A stretch of DNA of 64,000 nt from Bugula neritina (GCA_964035545.1 OZ037773.1:4617751-4681750); one strand, 5' to 3'. Numbered from the stretch's first letter, positions 3,604 to 48,463 are shown. Numbers and translations are program-made. Notes: generated by a model not told the origin, from the sequence alone.

Positions 3604-4660
3604 ATGAGAGTTGTTGCTGTATTTTTGATTTCTATGATAGTCATCAGCACAATGGGTAAGTTGATATTTAGCTGTGACATTAAAAACAACGAAATATGTT
3701 TTATATATTATATGTATAGATACCATAAATATCATACTATATATTGCCCCATTGATTTGTTTTGGAAAACGTTCAGTGAGTTTTCAGTAATGGCTTTGTT
3801 TTCTCAAATATTACTTATAGTTACATAAATTGTTGATCATTATTTTATTAGGTACTAGCACTTTCTCAGTACTTTATATTTCAAAAAGTTAATTTTTAAA
3901 GTACAGAGAATTGCAATTCTAGCTATATAATGTAAGTCTGCCCATTTATACAGGCTTCTCATGTTGTATATAAATTATATAAACTGAGGAACTAAAGCAA
4001 AATCATATAAAGAAATTGCTGCGCCAAATCTTTTTATTACTCCAATGTACTTATAGGATGATAGTGTCTATAAATTCACAAAAAAAAGTTGCAATTAAAA
4101 TTCGGGTCAAAAATCAAGGCTAATTTTATTATTTTGGTACCTAATTTTATAGCAAATAGCTGCAGCTCTTATATGGCAACTAGTTATTTAATCAAATTCA
4201 ATCTTTATATTGATTTTAAAAAAAATAAAGTTATGCTTTGGCCTAAAGTTAAGTGTAACTGGTAACCATTTTATTTGGCATATAAATATTAAAAGCACCA
4301 ATTTATCTACAAATATAGCAACTTGTGCAAACTCAAAGTTATGTAAGAAAAAATATGCATTTAATTTTTTTTTTGCAAATTGTATACAGTAACAACTGTT
4401 ATAGGCTATAGTTATCTAAACTGCTATATTGTCTTATACCTCTTCCATTATTGGTATATATAATTAACGCAGATGAGTTATTTACAATATTATGAAAACT
4501 ATTAAATAAACCTGTTTTATCTCTTTTCACAGCTAAGATAGCAGAGGGTTTTAGTTGGAAAACTGCCGCGTGCAGAGCAACTTGCAAGGCTTCTTGTCTA
4601 GTAATAGGATTCACCAAGTATGGCTGCGACGGCAGCAAATGTAAATGCTACAAAGACTAA
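3604..4660 (+). CDS. Secreted 6-Cys defensin-like (CS-alpha-beta) peptide, gene 1
   Basis: Exons 3604-3655 + 4533-4660 (phase 1, GT-AG): MRVVAVFLISMIVISTMAKIAEG|FSWKTAACRATCKASCLVIGFTKYGCDGSKCKCYKD*. Cys pattern C-x3-C-x3-C-x9-C-x4-C-x-C; cationic. Confidence 0.85.
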
Positions 4661-6680
4661 GATTTGCTATATATTCATGTCAACCTAAATGTAGTTTCAA
4701 CTCTTTACTTTTGAATAATTTTTTTTCCGGTTCATTTCATCACAAAATGTTTTTGAGATGATAGAATGTTTTATGCTGTTAAAGTTTGTTTGCTATTGAT
4801 TATTTGCTGCCTAATTTTTCTATATACGCCGTAATAAAATGATACATGTATACAAAAAGCGAAAGTGTTTTGTTTAAGTTTGAAGTTCTCTTCAGTTGCT
4901 GAAACGGTGAAATTTTTAAACCACTCAAATTGTGTATACAATCTGCACATTATAATAACCTTCAGTATCTTTACCCTACTTAGCCATCTTACAGCTGACC
5001 ACCTGCTTCAATAAGAGCATCTTAATGAGGATTAATCTGCTTAGCATTGCATGGTTATAAAACTAGAACCCTCTAAAGTTTTTCACCAGTAGAACATTGT
5101 AGATTTGTACTTATTTCCATCAAATACAGCTTGCATATTATATTCTTGCTTTAATCATCAAATACTATTTAGGCTATATTTTTCTACAAGCATTATTCGT
5201 TATTGTAATGTAATACCGAATATCATTTTTCACACTTTTTATTACCTGTGTTTCTCGTGAGTGGCAACTCTTTTCTTGATAAAATGTCATTGGCATATTA
5301 TATAGCTTTTCAATGTTGTTTTATATATATTTCCTGTTATAAATATATCATATATATTTTATTTGGAGGAAAACATAGCTTTATAATATTATTTTGCCAG
5401 GGCGTTGCCTACTATAATATACATATATTATATAAATATATTAGCTCCAACATACCACATACTCCTTAAAAACATATTCTGGAATTATAATATAATTTTG
5501 ATATACCTGTCAAAAACAATCCTGCCAATGCTGTTTCTACTATAGTGTCATGTATAGTATGTATAGTGTCATGTAAATTGCAGTTATTTTAAAAACTTAG
5601 CATAGTTGCTTTACATGCAACAATTAATATATAAAAGATCACCATATCCTGCCACCCGATCAGGAACTGCATGCAGGTGAAGAAATTAGGTGGACAAAGA
5701 TCACATTGATCTCTTAGAAAACATGAAAAGTAATAGAGCATTATTTTGAATATAATCATGCAATTTTTAAATCACAAGTTGCATGTCAAGCAATTAACTT
5801 ATTTGTGGACTTATTATTAGTGAACATATTTTTTGCAGTGTTGAAATACTTTCAGTGTTTATTATACCAAAAATTGATCTCATGCAGTCATGTCAGCTTT
5901 TATTTAGAGAACACATCTTTAAACAAATTTTAATGTAGAATATATTATTTCCAATTTATCTGCATCTACAAGTTTTCTTGTTTTTTAAATATTTTTTTTC
6001 AATACAATCAGTTCAAGTAGAAGCATCAAAGTTAATATCGAACAGATTTTTTCTAAATAAATATTGTTGATTCCAAAAAATTGTTTCATCATTTGTCAGT
6101 TTTCAACCAATCAGCTGTAAGGTATGTAATACATGCAGGCTAAAACTGAGACTTCAGGCCATATAGTATGTATACGAGGGCTTCAGGAAGCATTTTCACC
6201 ACACAGGTGTGTTATACATTTTACCAATTACTAACAAATTAAACAGCTACGGGTAAGATACTTATATACTTATAACAATATTCTATATATTATCATTATA
6301 TGCTATAGCCATTGGTTAATCTAAAATAACAAATACGCCATGTCTGTTTTGAATAGTTTACACAACAGCATGGATCAGCCTACAGTCGAACTAAAACGTG
6401 CTGCAAAAAAAATTTTAACTACTAAGCTTCTAAATATAGCCACAAAAGTACACAATTAAAAACATAACTTGTCTGGATGAATTATAACTACTATAGGTAG
6501 CAATTAGCCAAATGTTCTTTTTCAATAAATATTTAAAATGACTAAAATATGCGAATTTTTCTGAGTATTGCATATTTTTATTTTAAATTTTTTTAAGTTT
6601 TTGTATAATGGTGCATAAATCAGCATATTTAACTATAATAATAAACTATAAATTTATAGAAAGTTTAGATATATCAATAT

Positions 6681-7231
6681 ATGAAGGTCCTGGTAATGTT
6701 TCTGATTGCCATGATTATGAGTATTGCATTGGGTAAGTTGATATTTAATTTATATTGTATATGAAGTGTGTGAGTTTTATCTGTATTAACAAACTTACAC
6801 AGTTAGCTGTTGTTTGAAGTAATATATTCAATAAATTTTATCTCAAATCTTTGGTTATGCTTTTAGAGTTATCTACCTCCCTTAATGCATAAATACTTGT
6901 GTAAAATTATTGCTGCCATTGGGAATCGAACCCGAGTCTACTGGCTTGCAAGCAAGTGTGCTACCATTACACCACGGAGGCTACTGGAGAAACAGAACAC
7001 TACAACTTGTAATATATGCATCAACTGCAATGCTTTAATCACGTGACTTAGCATCAAACAAATACATTTCATAATTTTGTCATTACTTTTCATTTCTTAT
7101 TAGGTTTTGGTTCAATCTGTGGCCATGGGTGTGTGGCAAATAAAGTGATATACAAGACGTATTGCAAAGACAGAGGCTTCCTTAAATATAAATGTCCATG
7201 TCCGTGCAAAAAATGTACATGCTTCAACTAA
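6681..7231 (+). CDS. Secreted 8-Cys defensin-like peptide, gene 2
   Basis: Exons 6681-6732 + 7104-7231: MKVLVMFLIAMIMSIALG FGSICGHGCVANKVIYKTYCKDRGFLKYKCPCPCKKCTCFN*. TATA at ~5628, exon-1 donor at ~5676, AATAAA at ~7391. Confidence 0.8.
6913..7003 (-). mobile_element. tRNA-derived repeat (SINE-like) in intron 2 of gene 2
   Basis: Minus strand has an A box TGGTGTAATGG and B box GGTTCGATTCC with an imperfect cloverleaf. A related copy lies at ~54652-54745. Confidence 0.55.
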
Positions 7232-46045: not shown

Positions 46046-48099
46046 CTATTTTTTGAAATATTGAGTTCTTTTGATTCATTTTTTTAATATAGAAACTATA
46101 TATATATTATGTATATATATATATATATATATATATATATATATATATATATATATATATATATATATATATATATATATATATATATATATATGATCGT
46201 AGCTCGCACTACGTGAAACAATATTGTAGTCAATAAAATGAAGATCTAAGTTTATTTTTATATCCAAAATTGTATTAGTACCATATATATATATATATAT
46301 ATATATATATATATATATATATATATATAGGTATATATTTATATGTATATATTTATATGTATATGTATATGTATATGTATATGTATATGTATATGTATAT
46401 GTATATTATATATACTGAACATTGGTAAGTTTATTATATACTAAAGACTGATAAGTGTAGATACTAAGCATTGGTAAGGGTATTCACTGAAATTTTGAAA
46501 GTATATATATTGAATATTTTATGGTTAGCAGAAAAAAATCTAGAGGCAAGCATATATATGTAACAGAGCACCATAGTTGTTTAGTACTCTCATTGTAAAT
46601 AGTTATAAGAGCAACAGATTGCGCAGTGAAATATTAATTCCAAAGTTTAATACTGTAAAAAGTTCTACGTACAGTTTTCAGTAGTATACATTCATGGTAT
46701 ACACAGAGTTGGCAAGATTTTAAGCAAATCTAATTTATAATTGGCTGTATATATTTTTATTTTTTTTATAACTTTCAATACCTATTTTCATAAAAACTTT
46801 AAAACTACAATATCAAATTATATTATAATTTAAGTATAATTTATTATAGGCTATGTTAAATCACTTTCATCAATGACACCTCACCTATAGTTGTTACATG
46901 TATATTTCTACCATGTGTCCATCAAGAGTAACATATTATTTTATAAAAAAACAGAAATGATGAAGCTTTTTGTCATAAACAGGAGATTTCTTTAACAAAC
47001 AAATCATCGTTATTTTATGTTGTTAGGAAGTAATTGATAGCTATTAACTAATCAAATAAGTTTAATGTGACATTTCCAGCCTGGAAGACTGACTAAGAAT
47101 AGTATATATAAAGACCGTGACTGTATTCTCATTTTATTACTGTTCACATTCTAACAGCAGGTAAGAGAGTTGAAGTTTGTTTCTACTCAAACTTCTTATT
47201 TTTAAACTTATTGCAATATTTTGATATAAAATAGATATAACTGTAGATTAGTTTTAATGTAATAATCTCTTTAAACTAATTTTATTCACAATAAATGAGA
47301 ATAATCATTCACGCATACATTTCTAAATAATTTTTATTGATCTAAATTTAATCAAAACAAACTTACTTCTCCAACAAAACTGTACTTATAGCAATTTTAT
47401 ATTTCAAACTGAACATAAGAACTGCTGTTAATAAAATATTTATTTTTAACTATAAAAGAGCATTATTTTGTTGTTGCAGATTTGTGTTGCCTTAGAATTG
47501 GTTTAAGTTTAATTTAATATAGTTGTTTTAAAACTTGTTATTAAAAGTTCCGTGTTACAAGTTAATATGTTGCCGTTCAAAATTCACTATATGTATTACA
47601 ATATATAAAAATCACAGCTACCTGCAGTTAACAATAAGTTTGTTTCTATGTTTGAACTTAGCAAAGCCATTGGAAATATAAATATTCTTTATATCAAACA
47701 TAATATTGCAATTTTAATTATTAATTTCCTTTGCATTTTAGTTATTTTAAACTTTGTATTACTGAATTGAAATTTTGAATATTGTAAGTATGATCTTAAA
47801 TGTATAGTTATATCAAAACTCACATAATTCTTTATAAAACTCACTCTTGTAAGTTTATAGTCATCATTCTTGTGAGAAAAACCTTGATGAAAAGCTATCA
47901 AAGTTTATGTAATTATTTATAGTGAAGCCTAAATATAATGTATAAATTAGCAAGTTGATACAATATTGAGAGAATAGTATTTTAAAACATATTTCAATAT
48001 AGTTTACCTACATTCATATTATTTAATTCATAATTTACACCCAATTCAATAGCTTTACATGCAAAGACACAATTATTTATTTATAGAAACATTATCAAC

Positions 48100-48463
48100 A
48101 TGAAGGTTCTTGCTGTAGCTGTAATTGCCATGATTGCCCTCAGTGCATTGGGTAAGTTGAACTTATTTTATATTATTAGAAATTAAAATAAAAGAAAAAG
48201 CTATTTACAAGGAAATACTAATTCTAGTTGCATAATATAATTTATCTCAATACTATCATCTAATAATGACTTCATACAAAAAATAGTGTTTTTGTGAAAT
48301 ATTAAACTACTTTATAAATTTTTCAACAGTTTCAGTAGCAGAGGCTGGCCATGGAGGTCATGGAGGTCATGGAGGTCATAAAGGTCATAGAGGTCATGGT
48401 TATAGAAAGTCATACTACAGGAAAGGATACAACTATGGAAATAAACGTTATGGCAGATATTAA
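48100..48463 (+). CDS. Secreted Gly-Gly-His repeat / Tyr-Lys-Arg-rich peptide
   Basis: Exons 48100-48151 + 48330-48463: MKVLAVAVIAMIALSALVSVAEA|GHGGHGGHGGHKGHRGHGYRKSYYRKGYNYGNKRYGRY*. TATA at ~47103; exon-1 donor at 47160; AATAAA at ~48600. Confidence 0.85.

Follow-up and report, generated by a model that had tools for sequence, protein, structure and literature searches.

A stretch of 64,000 nucleotides (nt) of Bugula neritina DNA (GCA_964035545.1, OZ037773.1:4617751-4681750; hereafter the window, with positions counted from its first letter) carries a cluster of short genes for predicted secreted peptides. The cluster, which extends over 46 kb, is best explained as tandem and inverted three-exon genes of one lineage-specific family, which is real and constrained and appears to be undescribed. 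Nine loci, named here after the position of their ATG, share a short signal (leader) exon. The ATG at 3604, 6681, 15493, 26006, and 48100 on the plus strand, and at 18428, 21330, 28996, and 33582 on the minus strand, opens exactly 52 coding nt, followed by GTAAGT in seven loci and by GTGAGT in two. An earlier note on this DNA had given the nine start codons, the 52-nt length, and the phase-1 GT donor, and all of these proved exact.

A degenerate pattern fitted to the nine leaders matched only the same nine sites in the window, even when up to three mismatches were allowed, and 100 shuffles yielded a mean of 0.00 matches. An nhmmer profile of the leaders recovered all nine in the window with E values between 4e-23 and 2e-15. 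The mean pairwise identity of the 52-nt exons was 0.68 (minimum 0.54), as compared with 0.34-0.36 in the flanks, and between most loci the similarity did not extend beyond about -25 to +80 relative to the ATG. These comparisons indicate that the signal exons are one homologous group, as had been proposed. The second codon position varied least (entropy of 0.50 vs. 0.85 bits). Of the 15 residues behind M-K/R, 12-14 were hydrophobic. On account of these two properties, we read the leader as the coding core of a signal peptide and not as a repeat.

The 52-nt segment had been taken for the signal exon, which holds for the hydrophobic core but not for the whole signal peptide. In an alignment anchored at the splice acceptors, the genes with 6-Cys, Tyr-rich, GGH-repeat, and 2-Cys cargos could still be aligned over the first ~20 nt of exon 3, which encode A/V/G-x-x-A-E/D/A-A/G. 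The 17 residues of exon 2 and this motif add up to a predicted signal peptide of 22-23 residues with small residues at -3 and -1. The signal peptide is probably split by the intron, with the initial ~6 codons of the cargo exon encoding its c-region and the probable cleavage site. Because the homology continues past the acceptor, the 6-Cys, Tyr-rich, and 2-Cys classes appear to share an ancestral gene, the mature part of which was replaced or diverged. For the same three classes, the ~20-nt homology rules out free cassettes joined at the intron. Of the modular system envisaged earlier, the shared leader and the unlike cargos remain, and the leader profile together with the acceptor homology bears out that disulfide-rich and linear cationic peptides stand behind one leader. 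The 8-Cys exon of gene 6681 and exon A of an embedded lectin gene showed no similarity to the family after the acceptor in this alignment.

Each of the nine loci has one downstream in-frame phase-1 exon, which lies behind a pyrimidine-rich YAG and ends in a stop codon, and AATAAA or ATTAAA follows 97-330 nt after the stop in all nine cases. The single cargo exon per locus was thereby found as predicted. A motif census of the whole window covered [AV]xxA[EDA][AG] directly after AG, opening an open reading frame (ORF) of at least 20 residues, in all three phases. It returned nine occurrences in phase 1, where the first codon is G plus two bases, and none in phases 0 and 2. Seven of the nine were family cargo exons, from six of the nine genes and from a signal-less gene copy near 44 kb. 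The earlier note had given A-x-x-A-(E/D)-(A/G) as the start of most cargos. Among the remaining genes, 18428 has a cargo that departs from the census motif at its sixth position, and the motif is absent from the cargos of 6681 and 15493.

The paralogues 21330 and 26006 allowed a comparison of exons with their surroundings. Gene 21330 (22087-21073, minus strand) has a TATA box at 22087-22078, exon 1 at ~22050-22005, the signal exon at 21330-21279, and the cargo coding sequence (CDS) at 21164-21073. The corresponding elements of gene 26006 (25348-26238, plus strand) lie at 25348-25357, ~25386-25430, 26006-26057, and 26147-26238. Identity reached 96% in the exon 1 block with its TATA box, 93% in the signal exon, and 97% in the cargo CDS, and it was 53% in intron 1, 75% in intron 2, 78% in the 3' untranslated region (UTR), and 79% upstream. 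The conservation peaks coincided with the predicted exons, and the codons differed by six synonymous and no non-synonymous changes. This exon-shaped conservation, combined with synonymous-only change, shows selective constraint and marks the two as real genes. The splice model is supported by the reading frame, the splice signals, the phase-specific motif, and the exon-shaped conservation of these paralogues.

The TATA box and non-coding exon 1 that the earlier note ascribed to all loci are seen as paralogue footprints in three pairs, strong for 21330/26006, good for 48100 and the 44-kb copy, and moderate for 3604/28996. In the latter two pairs, a TATA-like box lies 75-125 nt before a GT donor, with footprints weaker than those of 21330/26006. 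Exon 1 is conserved within subfamilies only and cannot be aligned between them. The YAG found 13-21 nt before each ATG was rejected as a transcription start behind a proximal TATA box, as the conserved TATA box and exon 1 of 21330/26006 sit 560-660 nt upstream. The sequence between these elements and the signal exon is unconserved in the two genes.

The cargos fall into the classes listed by the earlier note: three 6-Cys, one 8-Cys, one 2-Cys, two Tyr/Lys/Arg-rich, one with GGH repeats and a Tyr-rich part, and one lectin half-domain. The predicted mature peptides have 18-41 residues, a net charge of +5 to +10, and an isoelectric point (pI) of 9.1-11.0. Mature-region DNA was similar within classes (z = 14.9 for 3604-28996 and 33.5 for 21330-48100), whereas no similarity beyond chance was detected between classes (z < 2.2). 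At the DNA level, the 8-Cys exon weakly resembled two 6-Cys exons (z = 2.6-2.9).

The 6-Cys cargos belong to genes 3604, 28996, and 33582. Gene 3604 (2774-4660, plus strand) comprises a TATA-like box at 2774-2785, a putative non-coding exon 1 ending at 2901 with a donor GT at 2902, exon 2 at ~3591-3655, and a cargo CDS at 4533-4660. Gene 28996 (30037-27831, minus strand) has a TATA-like box at 30037-30026, a putative exon 1 ending at 29908, a signal exon at 28996-28945, and a cargo CDS at 27973-27831. Gene 33582 (33582-32660, minus strand) consists of a signal exon at 33582-33531 and a cargo CDS at 32799-32660. A three-way alignment revealed six invariant cysteines in the order C..CxxxC..C..CxC with the spacing expected for CSαβ peptides. 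Their matches in the PDB were all CSαβ proteins, namely α-KTx 19.1 (E = 0.0017), termicin, arthropod and scorpion defensins, and nasonin-1, with marginal E values of 0.0017-0.2, and a 6-Cys profile matched CSαβ peptides only. The AlphaFold2 model, which had an input alignment of three sequences only, reached a pLDDT of 75 and contained a helix at residues 8-24 and strands at 28-32 and 35-39. Almost all of the top ~40 Foldseek matches of this model were CSαβ toxins or defensins (best probability 0.96, root mean square deviation 1.1 Å, target-normalised TM-score 0.69). By alignment and model, the three peptides look like CSαβ members with a defensin or short scorpion-toxin fold.

Gene 6681 (6681-7231, plus strand) has its signal exon at 6681-6732 and a cargo CDS at 7104-7231, which encodes the 8-Cys peptide and starts with G-F-G. 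The AlphaFold2 model of this peptide was unusable (pLDDT 55). Intron 2 of the gene contains a tRNA-like sequence (6911-6981, minus strand) with an Rfam score of 36.8 bits (gathering score 29), which ARAGORN did not call and which may be a tRNA-derived repeat or pseudogene. Gene 18428 (18428-18028, minus strand) joins a signal exon at 18428-18377 to a cargo exon running from 18104 (or 18098) to 18028. Its product, a cationic peptide of 18 residues, contains a C-x4-C loop and terminates in G-R-R, which is a possible amidation signal. Genes 21330 and 26006 encode an identical Cys-free mature peptide of 24 residues, rich in Tyr, Lys, and Arg, with eight Tyr. Gene 48100 (46939-48463, plus strand), with a TATA box at 46939-46949, a putative exon 1 ending at 47029, a signal exon at 48100-48151, and a cargo CDS at 48330-48463, encodes GGH repeats and, behind them, a tail rich in Tyr, Lys, and Arg; the 38-residue peptide includes 13 Gly, 7 Tyr, and 6 His. 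The pI of these Cys-free peptides is 10.0-10.4.

Beyond the nine genes, the leader profile had two further matches, at 19780-19862 (E = 6.5e-9) and over 30 nt at 44603-44574 (E = 0.05), near the two relics reported earlier. The first (plus strand) is a decayed leader copy: it contains one in-frame stop, its length is altered by a number of nt not divisible by three, and no cargo exon was recognised behind it. The second is no leader relic: the weak match near 44580 is the exon-1 donor of a signal-less copy of gene 48100 (44674-44044, minus strand). This copy has a TATA box and an exon 1 homologous to 46939-47029 as well as a cargo-like exon, with no recognisable signal exon between the two. 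Its cargo-like exon shares 79% amino acid identity with the 48100 cargo and has a longer Gly/His-rich stretch and a diverged 3' end. About 300 nt from this copy lies a transposon-like element (37118-43738) within the peptide cluster. Its 634-nt terminal inverted repeats (37118-37751 and 43105-43738) are 97% complementary and enclose an uninterrupted ORF of 1441 residues (38460-42785), for which Pfam and PDB searches gave no match. Two adjoining Lys/Asn-rich ORFs of 132 and 120 residues (45110-45867, plus strand), located between the 44-kb copy and the 48100 promoter, had no family match and are possibly the remains of another mobile element.

The lectin half-domain listed as a cargo is present at 15493, but it derives from what appears to be a full lectin gene at 10525-13215 that the earlier note missed. 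This gene consists of plus-strand exons A (10525-10695) and B (11379-11648), each encoding a PAN domain, C (11892-12107), encoding the N-half of an F-type lectin, and D (12974-13215), encoding its C-half and the stop. Exons A and B matched PAN_1 with 23.4 and 23.8 bits (Pfam cutoff 21.4). The two lectin halves were searched separately; the C-half matched FBP32 of striped bass (PDB 3cqo, E = 1.5e-6), and the N-half was weakly like F5/8 type C (20.3 bits vs. a cutoff of 27.8). All introns are in phase 1, and exons A-C are symmetric 1-1 and exact multiples of three. Exon A requires an upstream exon that ends in phase 1 with G. The leader at 6681-6732, the only phase-1 signal exon upstream, fits and gives Ala at the junction; the 3.3 kb that separate the 8-Cys exon from exon A offer a single, poor candidate. 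The 6681 leader thus probably also serves the PAN-PAN-F-type-lectin gene via the phase-1 boundary.

The lectin half-domain occurs twice (12937-13206 and 16567-16842, 92% amino acid identity). The 15493 locus (15493-16845, plus strand) is a duplicate of 5108-13400 minus 6838-12096, whereby the leader came to stand before exon D; it is composed of the signal exon at 15493-15544, a hybrid intron, and the exon D copy at 16604-16845. Relative to the parent, we counted 5 synonymous and 11 non-synonymous nucleotide changes in exon D, and 0 and 3 in the leader. As these differences look unconstrained, the constraint on gene 15493 appears relaxed, and the gene is probably decaying. Long microsatellites of (TA)n and (CA)n, flanked by a unit that recurs, are found at ~12.3-12.9, 15.8-16.2, 26.9-27.1, and 51.6 kb. 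One of them fills the hybrid intron of the chimera, and such repeats may have mediated the deletion. At 16119-16347, just upstream of the copied lectin exon, the same ORF text of ~50 codons can be read on both strands, a sign of inverted duplication at this place.

A representative protein search with lectin exon D returned 34 matches, and the 15 sequences inspected all look like single-ORF calls or partial proteins. None of these 15 has a family-like leader, which says nothing on which leader lectins use. A spliced gene on OY755166.1 of the chromosome-scale assembly GCA_963576615.1 (20248644-20271745) encodes a product of 144 residues with 38% identity to exon D and also an N-half motif. No family leader exon was found within 10 kb on either side of it.

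Taken as a family, these genes would be built and expressed as follows. A non-coding exon 1 would be transcribed from behind a TATA box. Exon 2 would contribute a leader of ~13 nt followed by the opening 17 1/3 codons of the signal peptide (M-K/R and the hydrophobic core) up to the phase-1 intron, and exon 3 the last ~6 residues of the signal peptide, the mature peptide, the stop, and the poly(A) signal. Signal peptidase would then release strongly cationic peptides of 18-41 residues that have no pro-piece. Four scaffolds would result: CSαβ-like (three genes), an 8-Cys form weakly like them, a short C-terminal disulfide loop, and Cys-free peptides rich in Tyr, Lys, Arg, and Gly (and His). Diversification would have proceeded by gene duplication under a conserved secretion leader, and in one partial duplicate the leader became fused to the last lectin exon.

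For the secreted peptides, we rank a host-defence (antimicrobial) role first and consider it fairly probable, judging from size, charge, fold class, and gene architecture. We do so because the unlike scaffolds are all short and highly cationic, one class probably having the defensin/short-toxin fold; because duplication, rapid cargo turnover, and pseudogenes recur in families of defence peptides (PMC5577615); and because a lectin with domains of the pattern-recognition type is embedded in the cluster.

Several results weigh against this interpretation. The cleavage sites were assigned by the -3/-1 rule only. The 6-Cys peptides scored under the curated Pfam cutoffs (19.7 vs. 25 bits for Toxin_37, the termicin family, and 14.6 vs. 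25.1 for Gamma-thionin), and the 8-Cys peptide had no match in PDB or Pfam. The Foldseek E values of the 6-Cys model were at least 0.16, which is not significant for so small a domain, and the best-matching CSαβ proteins belong to the ion-channel toxins and not to the antimicrobial defensins. The composition of the Tyr/Gly/His/Lys-rich peptides also fits adhesive or sclerotised-matrix proteins of marine animals. The cargos of 28996 and 48100 had no match among 5.8 billion proteins, and two strict IUPAC patterns of the signal exon had 0 matches in JGI metagenome contigs, where host DNA is sparse. The nhmmer leader profile found no match in eight loci of related organisms, which included the Bugula neritina contig VXIV02002100.1, JGI samples 3300002729 and 3300003318, and OY755166.1 (sources: ENA, Logan, and NCBI). 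The protein and metagenome searches are insensitive to sequences so short and fast-evolving.

A tentative extension is that the leader acts as a reusable secretion module. The promoter and leader of 6681 would splice either to the 8-Cys exon or to the PAN-PAN-F-type-lectin body, and new classes, the linear Tyr-rich and loop peptides, would have arisen in a defensin-type gene by replacement of all that comes after the c-region. We regard this reading as possible. The more novel parts would be the sharing of the leader with a lectin and the birth of new peptide classes behind a defensin-type leader. If true, the locus would be a caught-in-the-act birth of unrelated effector classes from one gene.

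The products of 21330, 26006, and 48100 could instead be adhesive or cuticle-hardening proteins of larval attachment or the zooid wall, with Tyr and His serving cross-linking or metal binding, and with the leader common to defence peptides by descent only. The materials of mussels, tubeworms, and polychaete jaws typically contain small, basic secreted proteins rich in Tyr/Gly/Lys or in Gly/His, and relatives of Bugula are fouling organisms that settle by secreted adhesive. The Tyr content of the 24-residue peptide, the Gly, Tyr, and His content of the 38-residue one, and the high pI would suit such a function. However, at 24 and 38 residues, the peptides are very short, and they belong to the same family and cluster as the defensin-like ones. 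Linear Gly/His-rich and Tyr/Arg-rich antimicrobial peptides are known (myticalins, PMC5577615), and we found no Tyr/Gly/His-rich adhesive proteins of this kind in the literature on Bugula. On balance, an adhesive or matrix role is unlikely.

We consider it rather improbable that the CSαβ members are toxins or allomones directed at the ion channels of predators, competitors, or settling larvae and not at microbes. In both sequence and fold, the 3604 cargo comes closest to K+-channel blockers of scorpions; BmBKTx1 gave E = 0.0017 and a Foldseek identity of 46-48% over 25-26 aligned residues. Yet defensins and termicin score almost equally, the shared Cys frame inflates the identity, and the linear and 2-Cys members do not fit. 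Bryozoans are not known to have a venom apparatus. Neuropeptides or hormones are a poorer account still, although the products are small secreted peptides and the G-R-R end of the 18428 product is a classical amidation/processing signal: the precursors lack both a pro-region and repeated copies flanked by dibasic sites, the peptides are extremely charged, and ligands of conserved receptors do not usually diversify rapidly among neighbouring paralogues. That the 52-nt segment belongs to a dispersed repeat and the downstream ORFs arose by chance, as a region rich in repeats and microsatellites with a transposon and two decayed copies might suggest, is close to excluded by a homology limited to ~100 nt with coding periodicity, the nine of nine in-frame cargos with a phase-specific conserved start, and the exon-shaped conservation with synonymous-only change.

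Several known systems come near to the one described here. The 6-Cys members resemble CSαβ peptides (invertebrate defensins, termicin, nasonins, and α-KTx) in the C..CxxxC..C..CxC pattern, the predicted helix and β-hairpin, and a basic mature peptide of 30-40 residues. Scorpion toxin genes have a phase-1 intron at the signal peptide. Nasonins, which are of the CSαβ type, reportedly have a phase-1 intron after the signal (PMC2853521), and the members described here likewise carry one at the signal peptide. Cis-defensins may carry 6, 8, or 10 Cys (PMC7203481). The family differs from typical CSαβ members by its scores below the family cutoffs, by the lack of a pro-piece, and by a leader common to non-CSαβ peptides.

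In frog skin preprodermaseptin-type genes and conotoxin superfamilies, which are multigene, a conserved leader precedes hypervariable, structurally unlike mature peptides, and a conserved signal peptide over unlike mature peptides is found here as well. Their precursors contain a conserved acidic pro-region with dibasic processing, whereas in the present genes the mature peptide directly follows the signal, and neither an acidic spacer nor KR intervenes. The sequences are unrelated, and the leader is split by an intron here.

Myticalins of mussels are linear, cationic, Tyr/Arg-rich peptides of a multigene family with pseudogenes (PMC5577615). Their genes have three exons, exon 1 being 5' UTR only; intron 1 ends just before the ATG, and exon 2 encodes the signal and the whole mature peptide, the one phase-1 intron falling within the anionic C-terminal extension, which is conserved and follows a dibasic site (PMC5577615). 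A 5'-UTR-only exon 1 and a single phase-1 intron are shared with the genes in the window, but in these it is the signal peptide that the intron interrupts, and the ORFs end with the cationic peptide, leaving no C-terminal extension. Residue composition differs as well: myticalins have PRY repeats (PMC5577615), and here Pro is absent. The embedded lectin is comparable to F-type lectins (FBP32) with PAN/Apple modules, its exons C and D together resembling one F-type domain and A and B being PAN_1. Phase-1 introns bounding modules are usual for shuffled extracellular modules. Here, the lectin differs by lying within a peptide-gene cluster, apparently borrowing its leader, and by a half-domain copy fused to that leader at 15493.

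Bryozoans, which are colonial filter feeders and fouling animals, make up a large phylum of ecological importance, the immune effectors of which are almost unknown. We found no annotated counterpart of the family, as the earlier note had surmised, and no published one, nor any bryozoan counterpart in the literature; the only bryozoan antimicrobial peptide in the literature searched is a big defensin (trans-defensin) from a Flustra transcriptome (PMC7203481). If the host-defence role is true, a cluster of defensin-like, loop, and linear cationic peptides, possibly with a lectin, behind one split signal peptide would be the first candidate effector family of the phylum. The 52-nt leader would offer a simple probe with which any bryozoan genome could be searched for the remaining family members. 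In addition, the locus is a clean natural case of a conserved leader whose cargos turn over, in which two decayed copies and a deletion-born chimera show the process.

The window is AT-rich, with a G+C content of 22-38% per 2 kb, and its gene structure is eukaryotic. At 62101-63293 (minus strand), ORFs look Nudix-like by eye, and a Pfam search gave no match. An intronless, rhodopsin-type G-protein-coupled receptor gene lies at 55704-56654 (plus strand). Around its best named relative, a Bugula neritina protein with 71% identity over 80% of the query, no synteny with the window was found; JGI samples 3300003318 and 3300002729 yielded two relatives that were closer or more complete. An exact look-up of the receptor protein returned no record. 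By these few matches, the sequence itself points to a bryozoan, probably a cheilostome, related to Bugula, and an origin from a mussel or Hydra, considered on grounds of base composition, was discarded. Cytochrome P450 exons lie at 52099-53748 (minus strand); they, the receptor gene, and the Nudix-like ORFs are ordinary flanking genes.

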